Under the pieces are notes generated by a model. The model was given only the letters and a program-made list of their open reading frames with translations, was not told the origin of the DNA and ran no database searches. Positions 3,327 to 63,755 of a stretch of DNA of 64,000 nucleotides are shown here, one piece after another (position 1 is the first letter of the stretch; each line of letters starts with the position of its first letter). A program made the translations under genes and the position numbers. Where the stretch lies: the NCBI GenBank assembly GCA_965603825.1, contig CBFDEM010000032.1, positions 434,001 through 498,000 of the forward strand. Direction: 5' to 3'. The stretch is from Blepharisma stoltei ATCC 30299 (taxonomy: Eukaryota > Protista > Ciliophora).

Positions 3327-3416
3327 CAGTAATATTTATTACATTTTCATTCTATAATTCAATAAAATAATCTAATAGATTTTCTAAATAATCAGCACTA
3401 TTAATTACTTTATAAA

Positions 3417-4652: not shown

Positions 4653-4752
4653 GTTAGATTAACTTTATTGATAAAAAATGTGATTTTTGAATGGCTTAAG
4701 CTTCAATTATTTTCTTATAAAAAACCAATAAATCCTAAAATTCGTTAAAATA

Positions 4753-4992: not shown

Positions 4993-5041
4993 GAAAACAA
5001 TATAAGCAATATGGCTTTATTAAGACTTTTATAAGCCAATA

Positions 5042-12198: not shown

Positions 12199-12245
12199 AT
12201 TAATTCAGCCAATTTATTATTAAAGATAAACACGTACCCTTATAA

Positions 12246-14002: not shown

Positions 14003-14036
14003 TCTCACTTATCTAAAAATTATTATAATAAAATCT

Positions 14037-29548: not shown

Positions 29549-29705
29549 ATTTATATGAGATTATTTTTATATTTAAAAACAAATTCCTACTCTTTTTCAA
29601 TTTTATTAAACTTATAAATTATATCAAAGTTCTCACAAATAGGTATTTTAATCAATAATTCTAGTAGCCTTTACATATCATTATGTCACAGAAAATAATC
29701 ATAAA

Positions 29706-30444: not shown

Positions 30445-30454
30445 GTAATAAAAA

Positions 30455-35516: not shown

Positions 35517-38500
35517 TTATCTAAAATTTCTATCAATCTGCTGCATTCTTTTTGACGATGATTTTTTTAGAGACTTCTCTGAATTCTTTTTGACTTTAGG
35601 CATCGTTTTTTCTCTAGGATTGTCAAGTTCTCTATTTATTGTCTGAATTTTATTGAAAACAAAAACAGAATGGGACACTAAAATTTCATCTGAAAAAGCT
35701 GCACCAAGGTTTTCAATTTTTTCGAATCCAATATCAATATCCCAAAAATCACTTTTTGTGATATACATTTTAATAGGTAAAGCTTCATTCAAGTCAGCAG
35801 TTAAGCATCTTATAATAAATCTAAGCAGCGCATATTGAACTTCATGCCTATCAGGAAAACCATTGCTACTGTCACATTGTTGGATTATTTCAATAATTCT
35901 TTGCTCAAAATTATCTGACTTATCTTCTTTTTTATATTCAGCTCTGATAAATTTCAGCATGTAAGGGAAATAAGCTTGCTCGATTTTTTCATATAAAGCA
36001 ATAATGTTTTCTAATTTTATGCTTGATAAATGGCTTCTGGATTTAAAGAAATCGCTGATTTTAGTCATATTTAGAGTTTCTCTACAAAATTCTGATATGT
36101 TTTTTTCAGGATTTATTTTTGAATTTTTGAGATAGCACAAAATATAGTTTAATGAGCCATAAATTTCTTTGAGTTTTATCGAAATTCCTCCTCTTTCTCG
36201 AGCTTCTAAATCTCTTAAGAAATAGTTTACCTTTATCATTGTTTCTTCATCAAAGTGTTTTTGATGGACTGAGTTCCTGATTTCTAAAATAAGCCCAGAC
36301 TCTTCATTTTGCATATTTAGTAATTCCAGCTGGTATTGGATTAAATCAAGCTTTGTCTTATCTAAAAACTTTTTATTGATAATATTTTTCACCAAATTTA
36401 TTTGCAGTCTTTCAAAATCATAAGAGATTTCACTGCCCATTCCATATTCAGGATTATTAAACGAGCAAATCCGCATTATCGTAATATCATCAATCTCTAA
36501 CGATAGTAGATTTTCTTTCTTGACCCTTTGCAAAGGATAAAATATAGGATCAACTATATTTAAGTTTTCAACTTGTTTCTCTGAGCTAATTTCATTATTC
36601 ATCTGCAGTAAAATTTTATTCTGAATTTCCGCCAACTCTAGCATTGCTGATGCCATATACATGCCTCCTCCATGCTCTTTATTGTCTATCAAAAAGAAAT
36701 TTAAACTGCTTGATCTATTGAAAGGAATATTTTTAAGGGCTTTACAGCCATACTGCATTTCATCAAGTCCTTTTGTTTCCCATGCCTTTAAAAAGCTATC
36801 AAACAGGGCCTCGAGATTTTTATTTTTGCTATCTTTTATAGCGTCACCTATTGTCAGCACCCTAGCTTCTTCACGAGGAATAGTGTGATTATAAATTTCT
36901 AATAGAGCATTGGTAAATTCAATTATTGGATAAAGACTTTCAACTTTTTTGATATCTTCATAATTTTGGAAATAAATGCGCAATAGCCCATATTTTTTGT
37001 TTTCTCTTTCCAGTTCAAAAGCATTTTTCATCGCTTCAAAGCTGGGCTCCTCGTTGTGCCTGAAGAATTTGAGCATTGGATAATTTTCATCTTCAGGGCC
37101 TTTTAGCTCTTCAATATAATCTTTAAACGAAGCTTCAAACTCCAAATCTGATTTTAGTCTATTTTTGTAGTCCATTATAACTGCTGGCGTACTTAGACGA
37201 CTATTAATTATTTCATTTTCAAAAAATGTTTCAAAATCATCTCTTATATCTTTTTCAGATGGTTCTCTGCTAATTTGTTCAATAATTCATGGTAAATGAG
37301 AAAACACTTCATACAGCCATACATGCCTTTCATTAGTGCCTAACATATTTTCAAGATTATTTAAGTCAGCTTCAATTCCTCTGCTTAAGAAGTTTTCGTA
37401 ATTATCATTATTTGGTAGAATATCTCTCAAATCTCTATCAGAAATTAAGTTCAGCTTTAAGAGACCATATAAAGAGCTTCCAAGTATAAGATGGAGAGCT
37501 TGAGAAGAAATAGGCTTGAGTCCTCTCATATAAATTTTTTCGCCAATATTTCTGTAGTATTTACATCCTTTGCTTGTCTGTGCTTCTTGTCTGGCTATAG
37601 AATTTCTTAAAAACGCTAGTGCTTCGTCATGAGACAAATTTTCATGTCCAGGTCTCTGAACAAGTTGGTGATTCACTCCTCCAATTTGTTGGCCGCAAAA
37701 TGGGCAATTGCCTAATTGTGTAGGACCCCCGCAATTGCTGATAAAGTACATATAATCACATGTATCAGAGCATTTATAAGTACTTCCTCTGGCATAAGGA
37801 GCTATAAAGGTATTTGAAATCAGATTATTGAAGTTTTCCAGAGTAGATCTTGTGAATTGAAGCATAGGGCTTGGCTCAGAAGCGACAATAAACATATTAT
37901 TAAATCGGTTGGGTAAATTTCGATCAATTTTTCCCGACCTGGAAAAGAAAATACTTGTCAGAGGGTTGGCTGTATCTTTATAGGCGAAAAGATTTATCAG
38001 AATCATGCAGATTATCAAAGATTGATGGACTTCCTTTTGAGGTTGGCCTATAGAAAGATGCAAAATAGAGTTTCTTGAGAAATTGTGTATAAAATTGAAA
38101 AGAAGAGAATAAAATTCATCTCCAAGAGCTTCAACAACTATTTCTTTGCTGTCTTCAAACCATCTAGCTAAGTTGTCATTTATTCGTTCATCTAAAGTAA
38201 ACAAAGTAAACACTTCATTCATAAAAGCTAATCCCAAAGCAAGCCTTTCCCTTGGGCTTCTCGATGCTAAAATCTTTGTAGAAAGTTCTCCATAAAAATT
38301 TTGCCCTTGAATAATTCCATTAAGAATTGCTACTGTTTCAATATAAGGCTTCTTCAAATTTTGAATATATGGAATGATCTCCAATTTATTTTCGACCTGG
38401 AGTTGGCCTATTCTGCTAATTCATTCAACTCCTCTTTTAGCTTTTAAGAACTTAGATAGATCGTCTATTGTGAATTGATTATGATAAAAAATATTTTTTA

Positions 38501-41500
38501 AGCAAAATAATCTAAAAGTTTCTCCATATTGTGATTCGCAAAGAAATTGATTCACGTTGCCCATAGCATACTGTAGATCAGGCTCAAAATTATTGGAGTC
38601 TTCTAATAATAACATAGAATAAATTTCCAGATAAATTCTTATTTGTACCATTGATATTATTTTTTTGATATTTGAAAAATTTCCAGAGTAGTCATAGAGA
38701 TAATTATTCAAAAAGGCGACTAATGGCGCTTTAGCAATCAATAACTCTTTATAAAATTCAGTTTGATCATGTTGATTATCAGCTTCTTTTAGCTCTTCAT
38801 TAGACTCTTCAAGCTCTTCAGGCTCTTGCTGTTCTTCATCTTTAATAAATTTGCAAATTGTATCACTTAAAAGCAGGGCAAATTTGCAATCTAGTCCAAT
38901 ATCTGATAGCAATATTTCTATTGCATTCAAATAAGGATTTTCATCTATCTCGAAGTCAGGATTTTCACCTTCCCCTATTCTTTTAGAAAGTTCACTTATA
39001 GTGCCAATTAATCCAGAGTTGTTTAAGGCAGTTGTAATTAATTTTGTTGAATATTTCCATATTTCACTATTTTCAAATTCTTCTGCTATATTTAATATAT
39101 ATTCAGCGTTCTTGTTTAAAAGTAATTTCATATATGAGGCTTTAAATGCTGCAAGGTCATTTTCGTTAGCTTGTTCTTGAAATTCGTCTTCTGAATTTAT
39201 CATTTCAAAGATATAAGTTACAAATTTTTTATTATAAATGTAGCTATTCTCATTTTCAGCGTAGAATTGTCCTACTTGATGAATATATAATAATTTTTGC
39301 TGATTTATCTTTGATTTTGCAACAAGTGAGCTAAAATAAACCCAGAATTCAAGCTCATCCAAGTTTTCTAGTTCTAATTTTCCTTTTAATTCTGTTTCTG
39401 CAAGCAGATTATAAATTTTCTCAACTCTTATTGGATAATCCAAGCCATTTTTGTCAACGATCAATGCTTCATGTTTGGGCATCATTTCTTTTATGAGGAC
39501 TTTTAGGACATAAGTAATTGATTGTATTAATGATTCATTAAAATCATCCTCAGCAAACGATTCAAGACTCTCTTCACTTGTTTCTGACTCGCTTTGATCA
39601 CTCTCAGTGTATACGCCTTCTTTGTATTCTTCGTTCTCTAATTGCATAGAGTTTTCTATTATTCCAAGCAAATTCTCAGCAGAAATCAAAGATACACTGA
39701 AGATTTCGCACAAAAGGACTAGTAAGTTTTCAAAATTCATGAAAGAAATTAATTTTTCTTCAAAACTTTCAATATCCTTGACACTTGAACAGAAAAGTCT
39801 AAAAATTACAAATTCATATTCCATGCTCATTAAGTTCCTTGCTAAGCAAATCCTTATCATGTCTTTGATAAAAATATCCTGCAAATATTTATTTTGCTCT
39901 ATAATAGCTAAATTATCTTTATAAACTGTTTTTTCTCTGTAGCTTTCAACAAAAGTTCCTAGAGCATCTTTATCCCTTTTATTTACCTTATATATTTTGT
40001 AAAGCTCTGTAATAGTCCTATATTCTGGCTTTGAGAATGGAAAATTAAGCTCAAATTCGAGCTTCAAAATATTTCCCTGATTTACATTTTGCAGTGCAAT
40101 ATTTCCCGTCTTCATAGTTTTAAAGATTGACAACCAAACATTTCTTTTTTCTTCTCCATACTCTTGATCTTTTTCACTAAAATAGCTTAATAATGCTGAC
40201 TTTTCTTCCAAAAGATAAATAAGGATAGTCAGTGCACTTTCTATTTCTCTTGAAATTGCTGAAGTAATTGCTGTAAATAATCGGTTTGAGTCTGATACAA
40301 GTTCACTATTATAAAATATTTCTGATTTTCAGTCTTTAACTCTCGGCTTCTGTCTAATTAGATTAAATGATTTTTCTTTAAGAGCTTCAATTAGAATTTC
40401 ATCTTTTGCTATTTTATCAATAATATCTAGAAGGTAGGAGTTTAATTTTTCTTTGCTAGCATAAATAGTTTGCTCATATTTAAATCTTAAAATGCAATTT
40501 TCTACTAAAGACCCAATATTTTCTTCGAAGTTTACTATTTGATTTTCAAGGATAAGCTCTTTAGTGGTTTTATTTAGCAGCTCGTCTGAAATTTCAAGTG
40601 TTTCCATTGAGAGATCATCAAACATTCTAATTTCCCATGAGCCAAACAAAATGACAGAGCTGTCATATTTTATGTTTCTTGTCATATGAATTATCACACA
40701 CACTAATTTACTGCATTTCCAATAATCTTTAGTTTCTTTTTCTTCACGGTCAATGATGAATTTTATTAGCGAAAGATGGCTGCTATCCTTTGAAAAATCA
40801 AGCTCTAAAATGTATAATGATTTAGTTTCACTATAGTAAAATGCCTCAATATCTTTAGTGATTTCTCTTTCAGAACCAAAATTGCTGATTTCATTTATAA
40901 CAATTTCATCACTTTTTATTTCTTGAATTTGGTTTGCTAATCTATTATCATAGGTAAATGCAATTAATTTATCAAAAGGTGCTTGATTTTCTATCATTAA
41001 TTTCAAAACTTCAGGGAATTTTTGACTGTGAAATTCTCTTCAATGACTATTGATAAAGCTTTTTTCTTCATGGTCTAATGAATTTAGTTCAAGTAATATT
41101 AGTATATCTGCTGGGGCTATTTTTAAGAGAGTTTTTTTGCAATCACTTAGCACTTGATTTTTATTTTTACTATCATCAAACAATATTTGCAAAGCAAGTG
41201 TTTCTCGGCTGTAAATTGGGAATATATGATTTTTAGTAAAAATGAGATCAGAGTCATCTTGATAAGAGAGAATTGAATTTACCCAATTTTCTAATTCAGT
41301 CAAAAGGCCAGCTTGTTCCTGGTTTAGCATAGATTCTAACGATAGGCAATGCTTTTCAAATCTATTCAAAAATGGAGCATCTGCCTTCAGAAGATTATTT
41401 TCATCATCATTCATAAAGACAATGACATGAAAATTGCTATGCACAAAACATCTTGGATTAAAAAGTGCACCTAATGCAATTCTGCAATATCTCCTTTCTC

Positions 41501-44500
41501 CTTCCCCTTCTCCTGAAACGGCAAAATTCTGATTAAATAAATCATATAGAGAGCTGTATATGTGATCCATATCTTTTAGTATTACAGAAATTCCTCTTTC
41601 CATATAGAGAATAATATCACTCAGAGACCTAAAACTATACTCTTCTTGATCAGTATCATTCTTTAGCTTGCTTCCTACAATAATTCTTCGTTCTGCTAAT
41701 GAGTTCAAATGTTTGTCAATTATATATGTGATAACATCCACTCTTCCAATGAGCATTAAATACCTGGAGCTTGGATCTCTTAAATTATCATTAATGAGAT
41801 CTAAAACGTTTATTTCTGGCAAATATTGGTAAATGTGCTCAAAATGATGAACCTGGGCAAAAAATAGTCCCATTTTATTTGAAGAGCCTGGCTTTCCCCC
41901 AAAATTTCTTTCAATTCCTTGCTTAACAACCATTGCAATTTCTTGATTATCTAAAACATTTCTATTAATAAGATTTTTTGACACTTGCTTGATTAAATGA
42001 TAAAAATCTCTCAGCCCATAAAAATCTGTGAATTCAGTATTTTTATATTCATTTTTCAGAGCAAAGTATGATTTTGCAAGACTGTTTATGACTGATTCAT
42101 GAGTTCTGAGGCCATCGCTATATGAAATATAAATGCTCATAGCAGTGTGAATTAAATCTTTTTCATCTGGGTCTGGTCTCGCAAGATATAAAGCTCTGTT
42201 CATTTTAGAAGCATCAAGCCTCCAATTAGAAATTCCTATAAAGCCTACCACATTATTTTCTATTTCTAGTAGAGAATGTAGGACTTTAAGTGGATTATGC
42301 TTAGATATTTCTGCAAGCCCAATTTCATCAAATACAATAACTGGCAATAAATTGGAGTCAGCATTTAGGAACTTTTTAGACCTTTCAAATGCCTTTAAAA
42401 TACCTTCTGATGTGCACGAGTCTGATCCTTGAAACGGTACTAATGTTAGCTCTGGAAGCATTTTAAAATAAGGATCAGTTGATTTTTCACCCCTTAAATT
42501 AGCAAAAATAAGCTGAATTGATAATGATTTACTACATCCAGGTTTTCCACATATAAAAATTGGAATTTTATTGATGATGCATGGAATTACAGCAAAAATA
42601 TTTTCTCTTAAAGCTTGGTTTAAAGCTGTCCCTTTTGTTATTTCCATTCTGGCCAAATAATCATTCTGCTCCTCTTCCACTATTTTAAGTATTTTTTCTA
42701 CAGTTAGAAATTCAGCATCTAATTCCTTTACAATTTCTTCTAGAAATTCATTTCTTTCTCTTTGTGATGAAATCCTCAAATAATAGCAATGCGAAAACGC
42801 AAGAATTCCAGCTTTTAAATCAAAATCTCCATTATCCACTTGATCGTCTATAGCCAGACCATATTTTTTCAAATTTTCATAAAATAAATCTCCTCTTAAT
42901 TCATTCTTGGATTGTATTGATTCCCTGAACCATAAATAGAGCATAATAAATCTTGTGACATCTCTAAGACTTACGCTGCTTACATCTTCTTTTGATTGGA
43001 AGTATTTGTGAGATAAGCAAATCAAATAAACGAAAAAGTCATGATAATTAGTATTGATTCTTGTTTTCAGCATAGTGTGAATGTATTTTCTTGAATCATT
43101 GTCAGCTAAATAGCCGAAATCCCACACATATTCAATCATTGTGTCTGGAAGCGGCTTAACAATATGCATTAATTTGCTGATTTTTGCATTAGCTTTTTTG
43201 ATTCCAACATTTTCTTCGTATGTAGCTTTTCTACAAGAAACTCTATAGGGATTGCAGGCACCTAAAAATGCCATATTATCAGGCAAAGAATCGCCCTCTA
43301 TACTTCGCTCGCACATAATCTCACATATTAGCCCTATGCTATCAGTTGTATTAAATTCGTCAAAGAATATTCACAATTTTTCTTCGCTGCCTATGTCATA
43401 TGCTAATTCAACTAATTTTCCCATTTTTTCTTTAATTTCCTTTGATGTAACTCCTGCATGGATGCTTATTTTTATCAATTGATTTCCTAAGACTTCTTCG
43501 ACGAAAAATTGAATCAGTGAGGTCTTTCCGCACCCTGTCTCACCCATGATAATTACTGGAATATTTGATTGAGTTCTTAGGTAAATCAAATTCATTTTTA
43601 AGAAATTATCTGGAGTCATGATATATCGAGAATTTGAATATTCCAACACAAGATCTTTTCCATGCTTATTGTAGGTTTGAAGCTTCTGGAGCAATCCATT
43701 ATGAGACATATTGGCATAGTCATCGATTTCATATTCTTGAGATTCTATCAATTTGGCAAGCTCTTCCCCTGGTCTGTTATAATTGTGCTGTCAGAAAATC
43801 AATTTTCTTATGCTTTCTGGAACTTGGTCTTTATTTCGGTATATTGGAACAAATGATCCGTCTTCTAAAAAGATCATAGTGAAATGATTGGAGTTTTCCC
43901 ATGTCAACGTGCACTGAAAAGCATTTGCAAAATCTTCTTGATTGTCTTGTATTTCTTCATTTTTTCATAGATTTTGTGAAGCTTTAAACTGAGATCTTCT
44001 AACATTCTTAATGCTTTTTGTAGTAAACTCTTCTGTAGTAAGTAGCAATGCATCTATTATTGTGGCCCTGAAATTCTCGAATTCCTTAATTAAAAATTCA
44101 AGGTTATTGTATACCAAGTCATTCATAATTGTTCTTATTATTTCTGGATCGAAAGGGCTTCTTCCAAAATTTCTCAATAGCCTATCAAGAATGTTTATAA
44201 AGACACTGATTTGCGTATAAGTAATCTGCTCTTTATCGGCTTGCTTATCGATGAAGTATCTTGTTAAGAGAGCAATTGCGCTTTCTTTATTTGTAAAATT
44301 AAAATGGTTCTCATTAACGCTTTGAGCTTCAATTCTGCCAGTCTCGTATAATTTCAGATATCTGGCTATAAATTGAAGTTTATCGGAATGATCAGAATTC
44401 ACTATTAGTTCGTTGAGGTCTAAGCCATTGATATGAACGCATCTTAAATATTTCAAATAGTCGATAGAGTTGTAAAGCATATTGTCATACGTGTTAGCAA

Positions 44501-47500
44501 CTTCAATACAAATTAGCATGTCTTTTGGGAAAATTATAATATCTTCTGTATAGTTTAGAGTTCTAAATAAACAAATGTTCATGAGAATTTCATTTAATAG
44601 AGCTGCATTGCTAACAAAACTTAATTGAAGGTGCAAAATACAGTCTTCGTTAAGATCTATAATAGAAAATCTATTGGAGATATCAATGCAATCAATATCT
44701 CCTAATATAGGAAACGTTACAAGCTTTTCCCCTTCGTTATTAGCCATAGATCGTATGGCGGTAGTTTTCCCCAATCCAGCAGACGCAGAGGTATAAACAA
44801 TGCTATTTTTATCTTCTAAATGCATAATGAGGCTAAGTTTTTCATCAATCAATATCTGGCTCTCTCGAAGATTAATAACTCTAGGCGAATCAAGATACTT
44901 AAAATAAGACGACAAAGATGATCTTGGGTCAGAAGTTATGATTCCAAGTCTAAACTGAAGATCGCCTACACGGTCAAAAATAAGTTGAGTGAATAATGCC
45001 TTAGCCTTATTTTGATTTTCCAATGATAAATTTTCGCAATTAATCAGCAAATAAAGCTCGCCATTTTTATTTAAAAAGCATCTATGGAAGAATGATAATA
45101 AATCTTTTCAATGAGTTGCATACTGGCAAAAAAATACCTGGTCTGCTCTAGGCAATTTATTTCTGGAGTTTATATAAGCTGAAATCACTGCATTGATTAG
45201 TTTTGAGGTTTCTATATAAAGAATTTCACCATTGTTTTGGGAAATAACTGAACGCGGGGCAATCTCATATTCGTTATCAATTCTTATATCTTCCAAATTT
45301 GGTATTTGATCTAATAATATTGCCAGGAGCTGAAGTCGGCTTTCAACGTCTTCATTGACTCTAATGTGTTCAATTTCTGCAAAATAAGACTGCTTTCCCA
45401 TAAATGTCAATAAATTTTCTGCTTTTCTTCTGTATGTTTGGTCTTTTAGGATTATATATTTTTCTAATGTCCAAAATTGTTTGCCATTCATGAATGATAG
45501 ATAATAATTTGACTTATAATGGCCAACTAAGTTTTTTTCTCAATTGCTGAAGATCTCAAGAAGATCTTTTTCAAACTGCTCAACTTCATCGTATTTTCCA
45601 TCTATGCACGAAAAAATTTTTTTAGGACATTGAGAATTCGGATACCCATATACATCTAGATTTTTTAAGTTTGCCAAAATATTTTGGATTGATAAAGAAT
45701 ACTGATTAAACTGAGAGTAATAAGCCATGTCTGTGTCACCATTTTCTTCTTGCTTTGAATGGGTCTTGGTATGAATTAATAGCAGAGACCTGTCTCTTAA
45801 TTCAAGCAAATTTACTAGGTTAAATGTTTGTTTATCATTCTTTTCATATGTCAGATTTACATCATAACTGTCTCCAACAGAAATGATTTCAAATGTCGAT
45901 TTCTTTACAATTCCAATAATTTGCTTTTGCTTGGCTTCCTCTTTGCAGTTCAGTACATTATGGAGTTCTTTTATTCCTGGAAGATTTATTCTGCAGTTCG
46001 AGAACTTTTCTTTCAATTTTCCTTCTCTACCATCAATTTTCTCAAGTATAAACAAAGCCATCGTTTTATAAGAATCTGTAGTTTTCGCTATTTCTTTAAA
46101 AAAGTACCACAAAAACTCAAAATCTAGAATCACTTGTGTGGTTACATACATATCATCATAATCATTAACGCTTTCTTTTAGCTGCTCTAGTTCATTTTCT
46201 CTTACTCTTGAAGCAAACTTTATAAGATCTTCTGATTTAGATAATTCATCAAGCACTGAAATTAATTTGTCTTCTCTTTCTTGATCAATGTACATATATA
46301 AATTGCTTCTTAAACTGTCTGAAATTTTAAAAAAACTAGCAAGGCTTCTTTTGTTTATATTTTTAATGAAGCTTGTATATTTATTGCATATTTTTATATA
46401 AGCTTGATCATTAAAATCAATCAAAGTTTGAAGTTTAATTAGGCTTTCGCAGGCTCTTAGATAATTGTTTTTACTTTTGATGAAGTAAAGGCATCACCCG
46501 AAAAACTCAATCGTTTCTTGATTTGGATTGAAAATTGAATTTATAAGTGAAATTTCTTTTTCAAAATCATTGACTTTTTCAAAAATCGCAATAATTTTCG
46601 CAACTGAATACTTCTTTATATCAGTCATAATTTCATTGAAATCACTTATCATTGATTCATAGGCAATTTTACTTATTTCTCCAACATTTTTTGAAGTAAT
46701 TGATTGCTCCTTTTCTTTTTCTAAAGGAAGATAATAATTTAGATAAATTGATGAGTTTATCACAGGGACGATATCCCTAATAACATTTAGCAACGAAACT
46801 AAGTCTTCATGAAATCCGAAATCAACAATATCTGCTTCTAAATAATCCTGAGTGGAATTACGATATAAGGTTTCCAAGTTATCACGATCTTCTACATCAT
46901 TGCAGACTATATCGATATAAGTTCTTAAAACATTAATGTAAACTTTGATTACATCTAATTTCTGGAATATATTATTTTCGAGATTCCCAAAGAAATCAAT
47001 ATTTTCTCTATTCTTAATTTGTAAGCAACTTTGTATATAGAAATTAAAAGCCTCTCTTTGATTTTCGCTATGACTTTTAATTGCCAATAAATTTTTAATT
47101 TTCACTTTGCCTTGAACAATATTTTCTGCTGATTCTGTAATGGCGTTAACTAATGCTGTCACATACCTTAAATTTTGAAAATTATCAAAAAACCTTATAA
47201 GCAAACACCAAAAATGATTCAATGAAGGATTGCAAAATAAATGCTCTTCAATAGCATTTTCAGAAACATTGTCACCTTCAGTTATAGCAATTTTATAGGC
47301 TAAAAACGCAGTTGCCAGTTCATTGTCCTTTTCATTTGCTTGATAATACTCTAAAGTTTTTATTTGATCTTTATCATAATTGTTCAGAACATTCTGATAG
47401 CAATAGTTGCTGTAGGCTTCCTTTAAAAGTTTTGTATTGCACCGATTAAACTCTGGAATATAGCTCAGAAGGCTTATACGTTTATATTTAGAGCGAGCAC

Positions 47501-49280
47501 CTAGCAAATTTATAAACTCTCTACAAAAATATTTTTTATCTTTTTCATCGTTAGGCATGCGTAAGATCTCTGAGTCAAAAATGAATATTTGGTCTCTATA
47601 ATAACTGCTTTCAAATGGAAGTAATGTATTCAATCACTCCATGAATTTTTCTTTTCATATTTCTTCATCAAGTTCAAAAGATTGAAAAATATCTGAAAAT
47701 AGACATTTTCCTTGCCTTATTAAGGATGAGCAAGCAGATTTTGCTGTTTCAGGATCAACTAATTGAGCGTCAAAATAATCTTTATATATGCTCTTTAAAT
47801 CAATTAGAGTGCTGTCGGTTATAGGGTAGGGATCTTTTATTTTGGCATTTATCAAGTTTGCTAAACTAGATTCGTAAAATAAAATTTTAAAAGAAGAAGG
47901 CATGGCATGCAAAACTTCAAGTGTCTTTGCAATTTCGTCTGTTTTTAGAAAATAATTTTTACTTATATATCTGTTGATGAATACAATTAATTCTTGCTGA
48001 TTTCAATATTTCTCGAACCATTCATCCAGATTGATATCAGTTCCTCTTTTGTAAATAATAGTTTTCAGTAACACAACGAAGTCAGAAAAATTTTCGCATA
48101 AAAATGCTATTTTAAGTGAATAATCAATAATTTTATTTTCTTCTAAATTCCCAATTATCTCAAATAAAACTTCGCAATCATTGAAATTTAAATGAAGATG
48201 CGACTCAGAATTTTTAATAAATTTTTCAATGACTTCTTCTTTTATTTCAGTATTTTCTATATGACCCAAAATCATTTTTCATTCATCCTTATTTGAAAAT
48301 TTTGAAAATATCATCATATGTGTCAATCCTTGAATTGCTGCGGGGTAATGCTGTAAATTTTTTAATTTTTCTAAAGTAGATGATATAGAATTTCCAAGAA
48401 AACTTAAAAAGGTATCAGTGTTATCTATTTTAGCGATTTGATAAGAATGGATATTATGTGGAAAGCACCCTAATAATGATAAGATTGCTAAGCAGCCTTC
48501 ATCAATTCTATCGGCATGTATATATTCGATAGCAGTGCTAATTAATTTGATTAATTCTAGACTGGTATCTTTAGTAGCAATAGGATTCATGCAATAACTT
48601 AAAAATTGTCCAGCAAGAATTGGAAAAGTCAGAGTTCAATCACTTTGTTCAAGTAAATAATAAGAATAGCATATAAGGTGTATTAATGAATCCATGACTG
48701 CAGCTCCGGCTGGCTGGGATTTTATGATTCCTGAATTTGGAACGAACATTAAATTGAAAATGAAGGCGAAATTTTCATCCGGAAAGACCCTGATACACTC
48801 ATCTTTTTCATAGTGAATGAGATCTGCTAATAAGACTCTGTGCTTTTTTAAGCTTATCTTAAAATATGGACTGCACCCACTATAGGGATAATAACCCACT
48901 TTATAAAGCCAGATTTTTTTCTTATCAAAAGGATTTGTATAAGAAAATCCAGTTTGCTCAAATTCTAGAGTAGTGGAATTATCTTTTTTCTGGATTATTA
49001 ATTGTAGGGCGTTGCTTTGATATTGCTCATCGTTAAACGAATAAATAGCCAAAAGAGTTTTTAATGGATCTGATTCGTGCTTTTCCAGTATCATATAATC
49101 TTTTGACTCTTCCTGGGTAGGCTCGTTCTCTTCTTTTATATCCTTAGGTTCTAAAGTCAATTTTGCACCTGCCTTATTATCAGATTCAAGCATTTCTCCT
49201 TTTTCGTTGGACTTATTCTTATTCTTCTTATTCTTCTTATCCTTCTTCTTCTGCGTATTGCTTGTCTTCTGCCTTTTCAT
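35517..49280 (-). CDS. Giant RNF213/mysterin-like AAA+ ATPase-E3 ligase, paralog A, about 4587 aa, no intron needed
   Basis: Twelve-plus track ORFs share one frame, broken only by TGA (15 by my count) with no TAA/TAG. Motifs: SASAGLGKTT; TPDNFLKM...IPVIIMGETGCGKT (Walker A 43521-43544); FFDEFNT; GACNPYR; SVSLRDV; GKPGCSKS (42525-42548); FDEIGLAE; GISNWRLDASKMNR; YGLRDFY; LYDLFNQNF; RFEK. RZ finger at 37668-37772. Confidence 0.9.
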
Positions 49281-50120
49281 TTTTATAGATTTGTATTTTA
49301 GTTGTCAGGCATATTTTAGTTCTAAAGAAAATCGGGAAAATGCCATTGGATATTGGGCTCTAAAGCTAAAGATTATCAGAAATAAATATATTTTTAACAT
49401 AAGCTTATTGGATTCCGAAAGGACTCATTTAGTCAGACTTAATATTAGGTCGCCATATTTAAATATATAATAAGGTCTAGCTGCCCATAGGATGAAAACT
49501 TTTATTATAATTTATTGCATAAAATTTTATGCTCACTAAGAAAAGTGTTTGCTAAAAGTTTGGCTTGTTTGATTATTACCGTAAAAGGATGAATAATTTG
49601 CAATCTTTTATCAATTAACCTATATCTTAAGTAAAGAATTTTACATTGCGTTCAAGTTTTTTGCTTTGGCTTTTCGATAGCAAGACACTGGCTTGAAAAA
49701 TTTGATCGAAGTTTTTTATATTCAACAGGTGTTTACTCTGAAGTTTATTAGTTTTTCCGATCAAATTTCTGTCCAGAAAAAGATTGATAAGTGGAATCTG
49801 CTAATATCAAAAAAAAAATAGGGCGGATAAAATTTAGCTCTTTTTACATTTATTTCTTACTTGATCCTTTAGCTTCAAGTTTTCAGTCTTTTCTTAATCT
49901 AAATATTTTATAGACTATTAGGCTATTTCAAGCCTCTTTTCCTGATATATGAAATCATTTACTTGAAAAAAAATATTAGGCAATATTATTTATTCATCCA
50001 TCTTATCAGTATCTTTTATTTTAAAGATTTAATAAAAGAAAAATTTCTTACTTTTGATAATAAAGTTAAGATTCTATAAAAATAAGGTAATTTTATCATC
50101 CAATAATTTGCCTATAATAA

Positions 50121-53100: not shown

Positions 53101-56100
53101 TTAAAACAATAAATGAAATATCAAGATCAGAAGAGCTGATAGCTTTTTTGAATAGTATTAATGAAAGTGATATGCTGCAGCTGAAAGAAAGTGTAAATGA
53201 TTATGATGATTTATACGCTGATACTCAAGCCATTATGGATTTAGAAAATTTATGGGAGTCTATTCGAGAAATCAAAAACATATTTTATGATTATCCAAGT
53301 TTTTGCAAGATTTTTAACCAGAGAAGGATTGATAAAAAATATGATAAAATTATAGCTCAGCTGCAAAATTGTAGGTCTCAGCTAGCAGGAATAAAAGAGC
53401 TGCATGTAAATATAAATTGCAAAGAAGAAGCCAAGAAAAAACAAATTGTTGAAATAATAACAGACTCAGAATTCCGCATAGTTTTAGTTGGAGATTTTTA
53501 TGATGTGAATTTGAAATACTTAAAAAACCAAAAGCATGATTTCAACTTGCCTAGTTTGCTTGAATTCAAAGAGCGTGCTTCATTGCTTCTTCATACTCTT
53601 GATGCAGCCCAAATTCAAGACCCAGATATGATTCTTCTTCCTGGATTTAAAAACTTAGTTACATCAATTCAAGAGATTTTGGCAAATCTAAATAATCTCA
53701 GAGTATATGGGTATCCTCTTATAGAAATTCCGGAATTATTTAGAGTTCATAACGGAGATATTTCAAGTGTTCTGGACTATGAAAAGCAGTTATCAGAGCA
53801 ATTTAAAACCTGGGAAATTTCACTGTCTGATAAATATAGTAGTAACTATTTGCTTACTTTTCTTCATGGGCAGCAGTTTTGGTGGCTTGAAGGTTATTTA
53901 ATTGATGATAAAAAGGAATTTGAAAAGGAGGCTAATAGTCTTTTAGAATATATGGGGAAATCCTATGCAAAAATAACAGATGTACGAATTGCAAATAAAA
54001 ATAATGCAGCTGAAAGGCTTTTATTATTAGGAGAAACACTGGAACAACTTCCTAATCTTCAGAACAACGACGCAAAGCTAAATTATTGTCCGAGAAACAG
54101 AAACAAATTCATCATAAACAATGGAGAAGTTGTTTACCTTGAGACTTCCAAAATATTACTAGGTATATTTTCAGTTTATTTTAATTCTTGCTCTTCAATG
54201 CCTCGAGCAGATCAAATCTTTTTCTGCCAATATAAAACCTCCTGGAATGAGCTCTTTGCATTTTTATATAGGTGTTTCACAAATCCAGGCCATGAACTAT
54301 ATCTTTTAGTTAACTGCGAAGAATTAGCTTTAGAGATTCAAAATAAATTTAAATCTTTATTTGCAGATTTGTGCTTCCACAAAGTCGGAGATATGCAATT
54401 TAAATTAGGCATAATTACAGCAGATAAATCTTCTGCATTATCATCATACTTTAAAAATACCGAATTAACAAGAGTGATTATTTTGAATGATAGCAAGTTG
54501 CTGAGCGATGATGACTTGAAAGAAATAGTTTTGGAGACTAATAGAAATTACGTGACTGTAGTAACTTCTGAGATGGCTGGGCTTGGAAAAACAACAGAAA
54601 TAAGACAGCAAGTAAAACAAATTAAAAATTATAGCCTTAATGATGAAGATGCTGAAAAAAGATTAGATGAAATAATAAAAATGTTCCCAATAGCTGGGGA
54701 AGTTGACTGTATTGATCTTTGTAAAAATTTCCCTTTCATTTCTGAGTCAATGGCTTTGCATCTTCATTTAAGCTACGTAAGCAACAGTTATCTGCTAAAT
54801 GAGTTCCTTATTAATCTATGCATTTTCCGAACACTAAATTACACAAAAAATATTATAATAATACCAAGAGAAATAAGGATTTTTATTGAAGTTTCCAACA
54901 CATATTCAAATATTCTTTTAAACTCTTTAGAATGTCTCCACTACTTCAACCATATTCATATAGAAAAATTTTCTTTAGATAGGCTAATTATCAGCAGAAA
55001 TCGAAATGATAAATTACAATTTATTTGTTCTTATCTTGACTTATATCATAGAAAATTGTTAGACAGTCAATCAATTTCTGAAATGACAGACCAAGGTTTA
55101 TCAGTTTATGATAATGAAAAAGTTCGTTTTTTGCTTGCTACCTACTTACTACCTAAACAAGGGGATGAAAAAAGCAATATATCTTATATTCAGCTAGACA
55201 TTATGATCAAAATTTTAACAAGCCTATGCAGGAATTTCGGAAATTGTGGATTTTTTGAGCCATGGATGATTAATGAAATGAAAAGTGATTTCGCAGCTAG
55301 TGGATTGGGTGCCTTTGTTTCTGATCTTGATAGTCTAAGATCTCGCATATTTGAAAGCATACTTTTGACTGTTAAAGAATTTACTTCAAAGTGTATTGCT
55401 GATGTTAGAAATCAACAGTTGAGAACCTCTCAAAATATCCAAGCAAATACTAGCATAATTGAGGATGAGGAATTAGCTGACAGATTCAAATGCTGCTTGA
55501 AATGAGAGTCATCAAACCACTTTACAATGGTTTTTCTAGAAGATGGTTCATTGATTCCCATATACAGAGATCCAAATGAAGTCCCAGTAAATATCAAGAA
55601 GCTGATTTTTACTCAGCACAATGCTCTGACGGCATATAAAGGAGGTGGAATCCCAGCAAATCAAATCAATCAAATAATCAAATCTGGAGCATACACAATT
55701 GAGGATTATCGACAGATGTTTCACAGTGATTTTCTTTTTAAATTACAAACTTATTGCAAAGACAAAAGGGACCTGCAATTAATGTACGTAGACTCTCAAT
55801 ATGTTATTACTCCAGACAATTTTTTAAAAATGAATTTAATTTATTTGAGAGCAATATCAAATATCCCCATAATCATAATGGGAGAAACAGGCTGTGGGAA
55901 AACATCTTTAATCCAATTTTTTGTGGAAAATATCCTTGGAGACCAGCTTGTAAAAATCAGTATTCATGCTGGCACCACATCAAGTGAAATAAAACAAGAA
56001 CTAGAGTCTCCGATGCTACAGTCGCAGATGTATATTGAGGAGGCTGCAATATGAGGCATAAAAGTAAAGAAACTCTGAGTTTTCTTTGATGAATTTAATA

Positions 56101-59100
56101 CAACTGAAAGTGTAGGGCTCATTTGCGAAATAATATGCAATAGAACACTCGAGGGAAGGAAACTGCCTGAAAACATGGTATTTATTGGTGCTTGCAATCC
56201 TTATAGGCTATCAATTCGAAGCCAAAGCTATCAAGAAAATGTTGGAATTAAAAAAGACACCAAAACAATTAGCAAACTCTCACATGTTGTTAAGCCGCTT
56301 CCAGAAACCATGATTGAGTATATATGAGACTATGGAGCTCTGACTGCTAATGATGAAAGAGAATATGTTATAGCTATGTTTAAAAATATTGAATCAAGTT
56401 ATACTGATCTTTTTGTAGATTTTATTTGCTTATCTCATAATCATTTTCAAAAATCTGAAGATGCAAGCAGTGTTAGTCTGAGAGATGTTTCAAGATTTAT
56501 CAAATTATATAAATGATTCAAGAACTCCATTATAGAAAAGAAAGCTCATAGAAATGAAAGATACCAAGAAAACCTGAAAAAATATAATTTGATTACCGAA
56601 GATAGAAATAGTGACCCTGATTTTGATGCAGGAATTTTAGCTTTTTGCCACTGCTACTATTTAAGGCATAGCACTCAAATCAAAAGATTTGAATTTTTAG
56701 AGGAGATTTGTAGAATTATTAATAGAGATACAATTTTTGTAGAGAGAATAATAGCAATAATTGAAAATGAGCAAAATGACTATCTTGCAAGGATGGAACT
56801 GCCTAAAGGAACAGCGTTTAATAAAGCTTTAAGGGAAAATATTTTTACAATTATTCCTTGCATTATAAATAAAATTCCTGTATTTCTATGTGGTAAGCCA
56901 GGATGCAGTAAAACTTTATCAATTCAACTTATCTTTGCCCATCTTAGGGGCAAAAAATCAACTGACTCCTATTTTCAAACACTTCCAGAACTTATTCAAG
57001 TGCCATTTCAAGGCTCAGATTCATGCACATCAGAAGGAATTATAAAAGCTTTTAAGAGAGCGGAAAAATATTATGAGACCGATAAAGCTCTGCTGCTACC
57101 AGTTATAATATTTGATGAGATTGGGCTTGCTGAAATTTCAAAGCATAATCCATTAAAAGTCCTTCATAATTTGCTTGAAATAGAAAATGTAACAGTAGGC
57201 TTTGTCGGAATTTCTAATTGAAGACTCGATGCATCTAAAATGAACCGAGCGCTTTATCTCGCAAGACCTGATCCGGATGAACTTGATTTAGTGTATACTG
57301 CAAACAGCATTTATTCATCTTTTGGAGGTATAGATAAAGTACACAAAAAAGTAATCAAGCATTTGGCTTTGTCATATTTTGAATTTAAGAATCAGTACAA
57401 GGATACCAATTATGCTGATTTTTATGGGCTTCGAGACTTTTATCACTTGATAAAGCAAGCATCAAAACAATTAGTCGTTAATAATTTCTTGGATCCTCAG
57501 CAAATTGCAGGAGTAGTTAAGAGAGCAATTGAAAGGAATTTTGGTGGGAAAGAAGGAGCTGCAGGAGAAATGGGAAGTATTTTTATGAAGTTGCATGGAT
57601 TTGAAAATATTTATCCTTATTGTGAGCCAAATATCAATATTTTAGATCTTATTAAAGAAAACTTAAAAGATCCAAGCTCACGTTATCTTATGCTTATAGG
57701 TAGGGTTGATGCTGTCTCATTTATTCTTGACAAGCATTTACATTCTCTTTTAGAAAGAAGAATAATTGTTGGAAGCAAATTAAAAGATGATATAAGCCAA
57801 GAAGAATACGGCTTTCGGTCACTCAGTGATATTATTCTCTATATGGAAAAAGGAATTTCTATAATTCTGAAAAATATGGATCATATATATAGCTCTTTAT
57901 ATGATTTATTCAACCAAAATTTCGCTGTCTCAGGAGAAGGGGAAGGAGAAAGAAAATATTGCAGGATTGCTTTAGGGGCTTTGTTTAACCCCAGGTGCTA
58001 TGTGAATAATAATTTCCATGCTATTGTTTTTATGGATAATGACAAAGACATTTTGCTTAAAGCTGATGCCCCCTTTTTAAATCGATTTGAAAAACATAAC
58101 TTGTCACTTGACAAAATTCTGACTTCTGAACAGAAAAGAATCCAAGAAAACTTAATAAAATGGGCAAAAAGAATATTTTATTTTCAAGGAGGAAACAAAA
58201 TGCTTTACACAATTAACCACTTATTCCCTATATATAGCTCAGAAACAATTGCATTATTGGTACTTTTCAACTATTGTGCAGATGAAGAAGAAACAATGAA
58301 AAGATGCAAGGATGTGCTACTAAGAGTGGCACCTTCTGATATTAAAGTACTACTTGAAGTAAACTATATGGAAGAGCATGAGAAGATTCCTATTATTAGT
58401 GAATGAAATGAACTTCATTTTGATAACTTTCCTGATCACATCGATTCTATTTTAAATGATTCAAAAGTAAATGGAAAATTTAGCAAACTTATTGCTTTTA
58501 CTTATGATACTAATTATTATTCAAACGAATATGAACAAGAAAACAAAAGCAAAATGCTTGTGAAAGAATTAAGTAGCTTTAAATCAGAACAGGATCTAAC
58601 CAAAGACCTACAAAAATTTTATGTTGAAGACAAAGAAATATATATTTTGGAGCTTGAATTTTCAAAAGAAAGCCAGCATTTATCGCTGATAAAGTTTATT
58701 ATAGATAAACTTGAGGATGAATTAAAGATAGAAAAAAATATTTGCATTATTATTCATATGAAAAGAAATATTAAATATGATAATGCAATTATACTGTTTG
58801 AGTCATGGAAAATGCAAATGTTTGATGGCCTTTCAACAGAGTCTTTTGATGTATCTGATAAATTAGCGAAAGATACTAAAACTCTTATATCTGAAAATCT
58901 CGTTATTAACTTTGAGGACAATGTAAGTGTTTTTATTGAAAAATGTTTATTGAAATTTAAGTATGACCAAAAACTGGCAAATAAAGAGAATTTAAACGAT
59001 CACATTGCTTCAATTATTAATAGTGCTTCTGCAGACAAAGAATTTGTAAAAGAATTAAAAGGAAAAGTTTTCGAAGAAATTAAAAAATCTGAAAATGTTA

Positions 59101-62100
59101 GGGACTGGAAAGAGCAGATTTTTATGAGTTCGGCTATTGTTTCAGATTCAAATAAGCTAGAAAATGCGATAAAGGCAGCTCTTTCTTATGAAATTGAAAA
59201 AGTTTTAACGCTGATTTTATATTCTCTTGAAGAAAGTTCGGCCCTTATTAGTTTTTTTAAAAATGGAAATAAAGAAATAAATGCAATTAAACGTGACATT
59301 TGGCTTGATAGTTTCTGAAATATCAGTACTGGGGAAATAAAACTGCAAGATATTAATCAAGGAAATTTGCTGAGCTTAGAATTAGTTTTAAATTTCCCAA
59401 CTTCTAAAGCAGAATATAAAATTATTGAAGACCTATGTGAGAACTGGAAAGAAAAAGGCATTTTTTATGAGGAGTCAATAATTAAAAGTAACATCCGAGA
59501 ATTATATAAACAAAAATCGCTTTTCTATAATAAATTTGATGCATTAAATCAAAACCTCGAACTTCAAGAGCTGCTTCTGAGTGATCTGGTCAAAATTTTA
59601 TTAAATAAAAATCTAATAAATCAAGAATTCGAAGATTTTGTGTTTAATCTGCTAAGGTTAGTTACAATCTATGAAAGCTCTCTAGAAGAAAAAATCTTAG
59701 CATTTATGAAGTTCAAACCTATTTTTGTACTTATTTGCTATGCAATTAACTTATTTTATTATTCGCCAGAATCCAAAATTAATGCGATTCAGAGTTATCT
59801 CAATAAATCTTTATCGATTTTAGAAAAATTGAAGAATAAATCCCCTGAAAGCGAAGAAGATAAGGAAGAAGAATCAAACTGCTTTAGTAAGATATCTCAG
59901 CCAGAGTGGAAGCTATTCATTAGTAATATATTGAATGAATTAATAATCTACTCTTGTCCAGACCAAATTGATAAAATCTACAGTGAAAATTGAGAATCTT
60001 ACCCTTCAGAAACAGGGAAATTAATAAGTATCATCAAAGAGATAGAAAACATAGAGGTTTTTGATATAAGAGGATTAGATTATCTTGAGTTTTGAGCAAC
60101 TTTTAGTACTTATATGACCAAATATGAAACAAAAGAAAATTTATTAAAGGTCTTTGAGGCCTCAAAGTCATTTGAGAAAGCCAATTCGTCTTTTCTTTAC
60201 AATCAAGATTTTGTAGAATATGTGTTTGGCTATATGAATCAGAACTCATCAAGTGATATCTATCAAAAGGCTGCATCTTTAAAATTTCAAAGCTATTATT
60301 TGGGCGTTTTACTTAAACAAGATGAAAAATATGTGCTAAAAATAGCTCAGCTTGTAGAGCAAAGTGAGATATGAAGGTATTCATCAGAGTTATTCAGTAA
60401 TTTATTGAATTATATGAACATAAAATGTGGTTTAAACACTAGAATGCTTGATACAGAAGATTTAAGAAATAATAAATATTCATTAGAAGTAGAAAAAACT
60501 ATTGAAATATGTGGATTTGAAAGCAAGTTTTCTATATTATTAAATGATTTTATTGGAAAGCATATAGATGAAGTGAATGAAAAAGAAAAATCAAGAGAGC
60601 ACAGTAATATTTTTAAATTCATGGAAAGGAAATTTTTGTTTGCTCAGCATTATAGGAATCTCTGCATGGTTCCTTCTGAATTTCCTTATTTAAACAGACT
60701 CTTTTCAATTTCATTTATTAAGCAAAATCTTGAAATTTATGCCTCGTATTTTAATCCTGAAAACAGTAATTTTGAAGATATTAATGAGGAATCCCGTCAG
60801 TTTTTGAACAAAATTAATGAAGAGTTGAGTTTAGAAACAAGCTTTCGGGATACTCTGAAGCTTTACTGTTTAAAAAACATTCACAAATCAAAGAATTTTG
60901 ATGGCTTTATAGAAGAAAATAGAGAACTACCTTGAATTCAGAATTATTCACCGTCAGAAAATGAGAATGAAAGATCTATATTCCCTTACTTCCCAAGCAT
61001 GAAAGAATCTTATTTAGAAATGGTTTATTTATTAAAATCATTGATAAATGATAAGTCAGAAAATATATTAGATGAAAAAATTATAAATGCAGATAACCCA
61101 AAATCCAGAATTGTGATTGCAATGGCTTTTATGAATGAGGTATTTATTAAGCATTCTTTAGGAGAAAAAATAAACACTTCCGTTAAAAATTGGTTTACAA
61201 ACAAAAAAGATATGATCCTTTCAAATCTTGGTAAGGAATTTTATCAACTTTTATACTTTTTTATTAATAATTTCCATCGCAGCAGCTATCTTTGCTTATA
61301 TAAGAATCAGCCAATTGAAGAAGTAGAAAAAATTCTAATTTTATGCTCTATTTCAATTCTCATTCTTTCTTATCGAAATTTTTCAAACCCCCTTTCCAGT
61401 CTCTTTTTCACGCCTGAAGGAACAATAGATCCTGACTTCCAAAAGCATTTCAACAATTTATATGTCATTTGTTCTGAGCCAAGTCCTATGTTACACTACT
61501 TGAAAGATACACTTAAAAATTTTAATTCTCTCATATCGAGTACTTGGAGGGCTCCACATTCTAAAGGGAGCACTTATAAATGTTCAAGTGATTGCGATTT
61601 TCTTTATTTTGTGAATGCATGTGGTGGGCCAACAGAAAAAGGATTTTGTCCATATTGCAAACGAGAAATAGGCGGAATAGGCCATAAACCAGTTCCCAGA
61701 GAAGGGCATGAGAATTTATCACATGAAGAGGCTATGAAGTTTCTGCAGGATTCAATAGCTCGAAGAGAAGCAAATGAATGCAAAGGATGCCAAAATTATG
61801 GAAGCTTTAATGGAGTAAAGCTGATTAGAGAATTGAAGCCAATTACATCAGAGTCACTTCATCTTATTCTTAGTGGAAGCCTTTATGTAATATTGAAGCT
61901 TGATGTTTTAAGGATAGGTGATATTGCTTCAGCAATAAATAAACCTCCTTTAGAATGCGAAGGCATTTTATGAGCAGCAATTCAAAATGATTTTACACAA
62001 ATTTCTTCACTTTTGAGTATACATGAGCCAAATATATGAATATTCAGCATTATATCAGAGCTCCCTGAAATAATTGAAGCTTTTAATGTTGAGCCCAGCA

Positions 62101-63755
62101 CAAAAGAAATTAGAGATAACTTTGAAAACTACTTTGAAAGAGAAATAATAAATAGCCATATGAGTCCATCATCTGTGATAATTGACTATAAAAATAATTT
62201 TTGTGAATCTTTTGGAAATGGAGGCATCTCTGATATTCTTGATGAATTAAAAGGCATGTACAAGCCAGAGTATCCAAATTTAAGATTATTCAGATTAATA
62301 GACAAGCCTTCAGCAGAAGAAATGAAAAATTATTTTTTGTTTCACAACCCAAGCCAGCAATTCAATTTGCTAAGCATATATTTTAAAAATTATGAAGAAA
62401 TTAAAACTATTGAAAGCTTATACCCTATTATTGATTTAACGAATAGCCTTCTAGAAATTTACAATCACAAAATTGCTAGAGACCAAGCAAGAAACTTGAC
62501 TATCAAAGATGCAATATTTGCGAATGAAAGCATTAAAGAAAAGTTCAGAAAATTTAAGCAGGCATGGAAAAGTAAAGGAATTGATGAGCTTTACTATGAA
62601 TGCAAAAGACTTGAATCAATTGAGTTTGAAGACGAGAACTCACCATTATCATATTTCCTAGTGGACAACAAAGAGGTTGGAGGAGGAATGTATATGGCTG
62701 CTGCGCTATTAGAACTAGCCTCACGCCATAATAAGTTATTAGGTCTAATGAAAGACGCTTTACCATCAAATCAGCCAAATAGCTTCCAAAGTTCTAGCAT
62801 TGAGATGCATCCAGTTCAAAATGCAATGAAAAATCATATACTTTCATGCGAATTAGATGACCCAGATATAATCAACAGCTCTTCAATAAATAACCCTCAA
62901 TATGGAAAAGGGAGGGAACTTATATATGATTTTGAAAAATTGCAGTCCTATTTAGCAAACTCTCTACTCACGAAGAAGTACCTTGACAAATCAAAACTTG
63001 GCCTAATTCAATATCAATTTGAGCTATTAAATATTCAAGATGAAAACTCAGGCTTAATATCAGAAATTCATAATTTGATATGCCAGCAGCCTTTTAGCAA
63101 GGAAACTGAAATCAAAGTAAAGCTGTTCTTTAAAGAATTAAAAGAAAAAGAGGAAAGAGGGTATCAAATCATAGTTAAAGAAATTTACTCTTCATTAGAT
63201 TACATACTTTGCTATCTTAAAAACTCCAAAGAAAACCCTGAGAAATCGATAAGTGATTTCTGCCAAAGACTGAATCAAGCCAAAATAAGTGAATTCATCA
63301 AAGGCCGTCATGCTTTAGCTGAGATAAGTCTATTTAATATTGTAGCTCTATATGAGCATATAGAATTTTGCTATTTCCCTTACATGAAAGACTTAATCCG
63401 TGCAGAGTTTCAGAAATCAGCCAACAAGGATGTCATTAAACATCAGCTGCATGGCTTGATTGAAGAGTGTGATGGACTTAGACTCCCAACTCGACTTCAG
63501 GCTCAAAACGCTTTGATGAGATTTATAATGAGATGCTTGACTGCTGAATTAAATCCCAATTTACCAATACAAATGTATATTCAAAAATCAGACTTTTGGG
63601 ATAAGTCAGTTTCCTATGAACAAATTCAGCTATTTGAAATGAGATTTTCAGAAAAGGTGAAGATCTCTCATTCATTGGCAACTTATGAGGAAATCATGAC
63701 TATTGGAGAAGAGCTTGAAAAAAGGGCAAGATTGATGGAATTTGAGAATAATTAA
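50121..63755 (+). CDS. Giant RNF213/mysterin-like AAA+ ATPase-E3 ligase, paralog B, about 4544 aa, no intron needed
   Basis: Single frame broken only by TGA (19 by my count). Same motif order as paralog A: SEMAGLGKTT, GETGCGKT (55881-55904), FFDEFNT, GKPGCSKT (56892-56915), FDEIGLAE and an RZ finger at 61581-61685. TAA stop. Confidence 0.9.

Follow-up and report, generated by a model that had tools for sequence, protein, structure and literature searches.

RNF213 (mysterin) is a giant single-chain AAA+ ubiquitin ligase (E3). Work on it has been confined almost entirely to mammals, where interest has centred on its role as the moyamoya disease gene and on its ubiquitylation of lipopolysaccharide (LPS) on cytosolic bacteria. 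The structural paper treats it as a vertebrate protein (PMC7311170). AAA3 and AAA4 are its ATP-binding and ATP-hydrolysing modules (PMC12075652). In the mouse protein, the RZ finger binds zinc via C4451, H4455, C4471 and C4474, with C4462 as the nucleophile and H4483 as the general base (PMC12075652), and the transthiolating activity of the mammalian enzyme is independent of its RING domain (PMC7311170, PMC12075652). ZNFX1 carries an RZ finger too, with an identical Cys/His dyad and the transthiolating E3 chemistry (PMC12075652; bioRxiv 10.1101/2025.09.05.674436). Here we describe two genes, A and B, from the ciliate Blepharisma stoltei ATCC 30299. They lie head to head in a 64,000-nucleotide stretch of contig CBFDEM010000032.1 (C32:434001-498000), which is called the window below. 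Both probably encode full-length, apparently functional RNF213-family AAA+/RZ-finger ubiquitin ligases in a RING-less form. The proteins are public already but uncharacterised, and no paper on them was found in the literature searched. A search for RNF213 together with ciliates or protists likewise returned no paper on protist homologues, and its matches were unrelated texts on 'ciliated' cells.

Under the standard or bacterial code, positions 35,000-64,000 of the window break up into 24 open reading frames (ORFs) of at least 100 residues. The initial annotation had counted about 25 ORF fragments and joined them into two frames of about 4.5k residues by reading UGA as Trp, and this reading held. 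When only TAA and TAG were taken as stops, exactly two giant frames were found in the window (4,665 and 4,545 codons). Gene A occupies a single frame with one terminal TAA, no TAG and 15 in-frame TGA codons counted from 49280, or 16 from 49346. Gene B, also in one frame, has 19 in-frame TGA codons, no TAG and one terminal TAA, so that TGA alone interrupts the frames. TAA and TAG account for 5.2% of codons when this DNA is read in its five other frames, and a run of about 4,500 codons free of both (the frames measure 13.6-13.8 kb each) would be expected by chance with P ~1e-104 to 1e-108. In the A-B alignment, the partner sequence has Trp (TGG) or again TGA opposite 22 of 34 TGA codons (10 of 15 in A, 12 of 19 in B), and this is direct evidence that UGA stands for Trp. 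The published macronuclear genome of this strain (41 Mbp, 66% AT) was described with the same reassignment, with introns of 15-16 bp and with RNA-seq-guided gene prediction (PMC9942806). The two coding sequences are:

35517..49346, minus strand: gene A, 4,609 codons plus TAA, 16 TGA read as Trp, identical to public protein P0161
50121..63755, plus strand: gene B, 4,544 codons plus TAA, 19 TGA read as Trp, identical to public protein P0162

The public models of A and B come from RNA-seq-guided annotation that removes no introns here, and they are residue-identical to the frame translations. Because they equal the uninterrupted frames, no introns have been called in either gene. Translations of all six family members in B. 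stoltei (see below) are exact substrings of public proteins, so the genes, which had been described as hidden, are hidden only when the standard code is applied. The four paralogues outside the window are entered at NCBI as "unnamed protein product [Blepharisma stoltei]" and carry the automatic UniProt names "RZ-type domain-containing protein" or "AAA+ ATPase domain-containing protein". A bacterial code-4 origin of the DNA was ruled out by the eukaryotic neighbour genes and the exact match to Blepharisma entries. Pseudogenes joined by read-through were ruled out by open frames of 4,500 codons, TGA at Trp positions and six intact paralogues.

Searches of the PDB with phmmer gave RNF213 chains only, for both full-length proteins. 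Residues 1906-2929 of A aligned with mouse RNF213 2352-3423 (E 7e-103), and residues 1874-2715 of B with human RNF213 2413-3271 (E 5e-106). A TGA-free core piece of A of 776 residues again matched nothing but RNF213 chains (E 9e-84; 285 bits for mouse RNF213). The motifs on which the initial annotation had relied, GETGCGKT, FFDE, GKPGxSK (here GKPGCSK) and FDEIGLAE, were found in both proteins. They form the Walker A and B motifs of AAA3 and AAA4, in which FFDE aligns with mouse E2449 (AAA3 Walker B), GKPGCSK with K2736 (AAA4 Walker A) and FDEIGLAE with E2806 (AAA4 Walker B), and they are kept in all six Blepharisma paralogues. The Pfam models matched in the AAA core of A and B were only the generic AAA_7, AAA_5 and AAA. 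The parts of the N-terminal half and the ring are:

46950..49346, minus strand: gene A N-terminal arm, residues 1-799, the part that has diverged most from B (29-31% identity)
43632..46949, minus strand: gene A residues 800-1905, predicted fold with its best match in the N-terminal part of RNF213, contains GLGKT
40560..43631, minus strand: gene A ring from AAA3 onwards (residues 1906-2929), phmmer alignment to mouse RNF213 2352-3423
43521..43544, minus strand: gene A AAA3 Walker A, GETGCGKT
43356..43367, minus strand: gene A AAA3 Walker B, FFDE, aligned to mouse E2449
42528..42548, minus strand: gene A AAA4 Walker A, GKPGCSK, aligned to mouse K2736
42309..42332, minus strand: gene A AAA4 Walker B, FDEIGLAE, aligned to mouse E2806
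55740..58265, plus strand: gene B AAA core, residues 1874-2715, phmmer alignment to human RNF213 2413-3271
55881..55904, plus strand: gene B AAA3 Walker A, GETGCGKT (Walker B FFDE at 56082-56093)
56892..56912, plus strand: gene B AAA4 Walker A, GKPGCSK (Walker B FDEIGLAE at 57111-57134)

The region in front of AAA3 was compared at the level of predicted fold. Two AlphaFold2 models were built for A on alignments of 72-77 homologues. The model of residues 800-1905 had a predicted local distance difference test score (pLDDT) of 88, and RNF213 took the top eight places among its Foldseek matches (E 1.6e-23 to 3e-19). Dynein motors followed only from rank 9 at E 6e-7, a match weaker by 16 orders of magnitude, and came up for this one of the two models alone. 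Because it directly precedes the AAA3 alignment in the chain, this modelled segment is placed as the linker plus AAA1-AAA2, the Foldseek matches being without aligned ranges. It contains a GLGKT P-loop (A 1524-1528) that shows no variation among 77 homologues and that its place in the chain, not an alignment, marks as the putative Walker A of AAA2. Thus phmmer and the top Foldseek matches both point to RNF213, as proposed initially, and not to dynein or midasin. A and B themselves are colinear paralogues with 45-46% identity over about 4,400 aligned residues. The AAA core is the best conserved region, at 58-75% identity, followed by the C-terminal domain (CTD) at about 50% and the E3 shell at 32-41%; the first 900 residues have 29-31%.

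The C-terminal half was aligned with a profile built from 34 sequences over the last 1,680 residues. This profile matched mouse RNF213 4084-5025 (E 2e-37), the RZ fingers being in register, and so took in the distal part of the E3 shell, the RZ finger and the CTD in one alignment. The AlphaFold2 model of A 2931-3860 was all-helical (pLDDT 87). Its top seven Foldseek matches were RNF213 (E 6.5e-7 to 6.6e-4), followed by importin-like and generic solenoids at E >0.01. When the RZ-containing piece and the E3-shell piece of A were searched against the PDB with phmmer, nothing was found at E <=0.1; the homology of these parts is therefore visible only via the family profile and the predicted folds. 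An RZ query of 80 residues alone found RNF213 at E ~2 in the right register, next to chance-level matches to eIF2-gamma zinc ribbons. A fold comparison with PDB chains of up to 3,000 residues, a range outside which RNF213 lies, gave only generic helical repeats (Z <=6).

The RZ finger was detected directly by Pfam (ZnF_RZ-type, PF20173; 45.6 bits in A and 38.8 bits in B, cut-off 27). In A, residues C3872, C3881, C3884 and H3893 align with mouse C4462, C4471, C4474 and H4483. The predicted zinc ligands are C3859, C3863, C3881 and C3884, with C3872 as the predicted nucleophile and H3893 as the predicted general base. B has the same Cys4 knuckles and Cys/His dyad between C3821 and H3855, with C3834 at the nucleophile position. 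A and B thus keep all six functional residues of the finger. Together with the AAA3 and AAA4 Walker motifs this fits the earlier description of both copies as 'catalytically intact-looking'. The C-terminal parts are:

37773..40559, minus strand: gene A hinge and all-helical E3 shell, residues 2930-3858, without a RING
37668..37772, minus strand: gene A RZ finger, residues 3859-3893, from Pfam and the alignment to mouse
35520..37667, minus strand: gene A CTD, residues 3894-4609, profile reaches mouse residue 5025
61581..61685, plus strand: gene B RZ finger, residues 3821-3855, from Pfam and alignment
61686..63752, plus strand: gene B CTD, from the A-B alignment, B being a row in the family alignment

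Of the 4,609 residues of A, those between about 800 and about 4450 are homologous to RNF213. The modules follow each other as they do in RNF213: an N-terminal part (by position the linker and AAA1-2), AAA3-6, hinge and E3 shell, RZ finger and CTD. Compared with the vertebrate structures (mouse 6TAX and 7OIK, human 8S24), A and B share the giant single chain, the dynein-like ring of six AAA modules with Walker A and B motifs in AAA3 and AAA4 and a P-loop upstream (AAA2 by position), the helical E3 shell, the CTD and the RZ nucleophile Cys and general-base His in register. They differ in being about 540-600 residues shorter and in having only about 11-15% identity to vertebrate RNF213 outside the core. 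ZNFX1, which shares the RZ dyad and its chemistry, differs in the rest of the protein, being a superfamily 1 (SF1) RNA helicase with NFX1-type zinc fingers, whereas the ATPase of A and B is a six-AAA ring. Full-length Pfam scans of A and B listed AAA-type models and the RZ finger only, and no helicase or NFX1-type domain.

The main difference to vertebrate RNF213 is the missing RING. No Pfam RING model was found in A or B in the full-length scan at E <=0.1, and in none of the six paralogues do Cys and His cluster anywhere but in the RZ finger. The stretch of about 920 residues that separates the ring from the RZ finger in A (2931-3850) has just 9 Cys and 7 His, and these are scattered. The region corresponding to the RING is helical with a disordered acidic loop, rich in Ser and Glu, at A 3243-3264 of the otherwise helical model, and the family profile left the RING-bearing mouse segment 3940-3999 unaligned. 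A canonical RING pattern was found in none of about 100 full-length homologues, and the Pfam records of the best 120 listed relatives include no RING domain. Because they have no RING domain, A and B are classed as RNF213-family homologues and not as RNF213 orthologues. Since the mammalian chemistry does not need the RING, its absence here is no argument against activity.

By analogy with mouse and human RNF213 (PMC12075652, PMC7311170), ATP binding at AAA3 and AAA4 would turn on the E3 module. A Cys-reactive E2~ubiquitin conjugate would dock on the CTD and E3 shell, and ubiquitin would move by transthiolation to the cysteine of the RZ loop (A C3872, B C3834). From there, it would be passed to a nucleophile on the substrate with help of the histidine (A H3893, B H3855). 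This nucleophile could be a hydroxyl on a lipid or a sugar.

Several observations weigh against the assignment of A and B as functional ligases of this family. The global template modelling scores (TM-scores) to RNF213 were modest, with 0.32-0.48 overall and 0.32-0.39 for the E3 shell, since domain arrangements differ or are mispredicted. The first zinc knuckle reads CxxxC in place of the mammalian CxxxH, the second ligand thus being Cys and not His, and two extra residues stand before the nucleophile. At the N-terminus, a profile of residues 1-1905 had no match in the PDB, and with this profile no similarity to the RNF213 stalk was detected for A 1-799. The initial annotation had given the proteins the complete RNF213 architecture. 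The linker and AAA core, helical E3 shell, RZ finger and CTD were recovered, and for the N-terminal arm a likeness to the stalk could not be shown. Four read-archive runs from one study cover both genes with 4-8 short contigs each, at a depth of 2-8 and with no joints, and their type is unrecorded ('RNA?' is a guess). These contigs decide neither expression nor silence.

The initial annotation had treated the two copies as a special pair. However, they are two of six intact full-length paralogues in the genome (41.46-Mb assembly, 64 contigs), which have 4,515-4,609 residues and a pairwise identity of 30-64%. Paralogues C, D and E (4,548-4,582 residues) share 57-64% mutual identity, and D and E stand in tandem about 1.1 kb apart. 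The four copies outside the window are:

C38:118296-131996, minus strand: paralogue C
C38:163199-176848, minus strand: paralogue D
C38:177939-191708, minus strand: paralogue E
G000:C52:117252-130829, plus strand: paralogue F, loci L004+L008, protein P0005

The RZ Cys/His dyad is kept in five of the six, the exception being F. In F, the four zinc ligands are kept, and Asp stands at the nucleophile position (PGDGYP compared with xCGxP) and Lys at that of the general base (GGENK compared with GGxxH). Its AAA3 and AAA4 Walker motifs are intact, and no RZ Pfam domain is on record. From these replacements F is probably a catalytically dead pseudo-ligase. The N-terminal arms of the six paralogues diverge fast and probably set different targets.

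Relatives outside Blepharisma were searched with the core piece of A among 1.84 billion cluster representatives. This gave 3,787 matches at E <=1e-3, 1,026 of them at E <=1e-30. The best 150 scored about 410-760 bits each, above mouse RNF213 with its 285 bits. Named relatives among the matches listed were three proteins of Stentor coeruleus, very many of bdelloid rotifers and one of a clam; many further relatives lie on environmental contigs, and a protein atlas gave leads in Foraminifera and Mucoromycota. With 400-760 bits for the core piece, the Stentor, bdelloid, bivalve and environmental proteins are closer in sequence to A and B than vertebrate RNF213 is. They are uncharacterised and resemble A and B in having similar lengths, an RZ finger in many cases and no RING Pfam domain listed. 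The bdelloids (Rotaria, Adineta, Didymodactylos) contribute dozens of 90%-identity clusters to the best 120 matches (proteins P0160-P0265), and an RZ finger is listed for only some of these proteins. RNF213-like proteins from outside animals, for example the three of Stentor coeruleus, were thus already in the databases.

A core tree was calculated as a quick maximum-likelihood tree in IQ-TREE (45 rows, midpoint root, no vertebrate RNF213 row), with support values only from the Shimodaira-Hasegawa-like approximate likelihood ratio test (SH-aLRT). In this tree the six Blepharisma copies form one clade (99), which suggests that the six arose within this lineage. The clade is placed within a Stentor plus environmental clade (100), apart from the rotifer/mollusc clade. 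The topology fits vertical descent with expansion within the lineage, and not recent transfer from animals. Vertebrates, in comparison, have one or two paralogues.

What the ligases act on was considered in the light of these data. A non-immune housekeeping role, in which the enzymes would modify lipid droplets, damaged organelle or phagosome membranes or other non-protein surfaces and the paralogues would divide the compartments among themselves, is a tenable though tentative explanation. It would use the same conserved catalytic core. The spread of the family over eukaryotes of differing life styles (Stentor, rotifers and molluscs, with Foraminifera and Mucoromycota as leads) points to an ancient general function, and in recent work mammalian RNF213 has targets other than pathogens, damaged mitochondria being one (bioRxiv 10.64898/2026.09.21.752888). 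On the other hand, six diverging paralogues are more than a single housekeeping task seems to need.

The initial annotation had favoured a cell-autonomous antibacterial pair that coats cytosolic bacteria, endosymbionts or parasites with ubiquitin, as mammalian RNF213 does with LPS. We regard this as a reasonable but rather unlikely hypothesis, and a non-immune role in membrane or organelle surveillance as at least as likely. The machinery that ubiquitylates lipid A and LPS in mammals, i.e. the RZ dyad, the AAA3 and AAA4 sites and the CTD, is conserved in A and B. The expansion to six paralogues within the lineage, with the N-terminal arm diverging fastest, is a pattern often seen in immune genes. 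Blepharisma also feeds on bacteria. In bivalves with symbionts, expansions of RNF213 have been linked to the handling of LPS (PMC9993606). However, the antibacterial role is drawn by analogy only, and the neighbouring genes are housekeeping genes (listed below). Lineage-specific expansion is common in many ciliate gene families, and the mammalian enzyme has further targets, among them lipid droplets and damaged mitochondria, so that membership in the family is not proof of immunity. Co-regulation of A and B and immunity outside animals, both raised initially, would follow from analogy alone; sequence, neighbours and reads have no bearing on them. A still bolder proposal, doubtful on the present data, is that RZ-finger ubiquitylation is an ancient cell-autonomous defence that predates animals. 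The RING-less form would then be ancestral, and the six paralogues would be diversified sensors and effectors for tagging escaped prey bacteria, symbionts or parasites in a phagotrophic protist.

That A and B are dynein, midasin or other AAA+ mechanoenzymes, or decayed pseudogenes, is highly improbable: the Pfam names of the core are generic and dynein motors do occur among the fold matches (weakly, E >=6e-7), but sequence searches returned no dynein or midasin chain, the RZ finger and CTD are RNF213-specific, the frames are open and six intact paralogues exist. With the dynein heavy chain, A and B share six AAA modules and a linker in front. Unlike dynein, they have no stalk with a microtubule-binding domain, their C-terminal half is an E3 module, and their conserved active-site motifs lie in AAA3 and AAA4 and not in AAA1.

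As RNF213-family ligases, the RING-less ciliate copies and their Stentor, rotifer and mollusc kin point to the AAA ring, RZ finger and CTD as the old part of the machine that has been conserved. The RING may have been gained later, on the way to vertebrates, which agrees with the biochemical finding that it is dispensable, and the homologues offer the field natural "RING-deletion" variants. Heterotrich ciliates may serve to probe the ancestral job of the enzyme; in Stentor, genes can be silenced by feeding-based RNA interference. Were the immune reading true, it would be important.

The other genes identified in the window are ordinary eukaryotic genes:

870-3335: Sec23/24-type zinc-finger protein
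7847-9631: RMC1
9991-12213: WD40 protein
13935-15605: Vps53
21674-23848, minus strand: complete cullin with Cullin and neddylation domains (E 4e-153)
30452-32887, plus strand: retinoblastoma-family protein with an RB_A domain (E 2e-29)

In addition, an open frame of 1,475 codons with TGA read as Trp lies at 25136-29560 on the minus strand. Two large pieces of it (859 and 524 residues) had no Pfam match at E <=1e-4. An Rfam scan of the whole window gave no match.

The head-to-head arrangement of A and B was described correctly at the outset. The spacer length of 840 bp given then holds for the next Met of A (49280), and the publicly annotated start (49346) leaves 774 bp:

49347..50120, no strand: divergent intergenic spacer, 774 bp

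No convincing ORF was found in this spacer. In three of the four read-archive runs, one contig each (236-423 nt, depth about 7) covers part of it, at 49500-49922, with a divergence of about 4% and 1-4 single-base indels. In the coding parts of A and B, most contigs match exactly. With the run type unrecorded, the diverged spacer contigs may come from another strain or allele, or from a diverged repeat copy.

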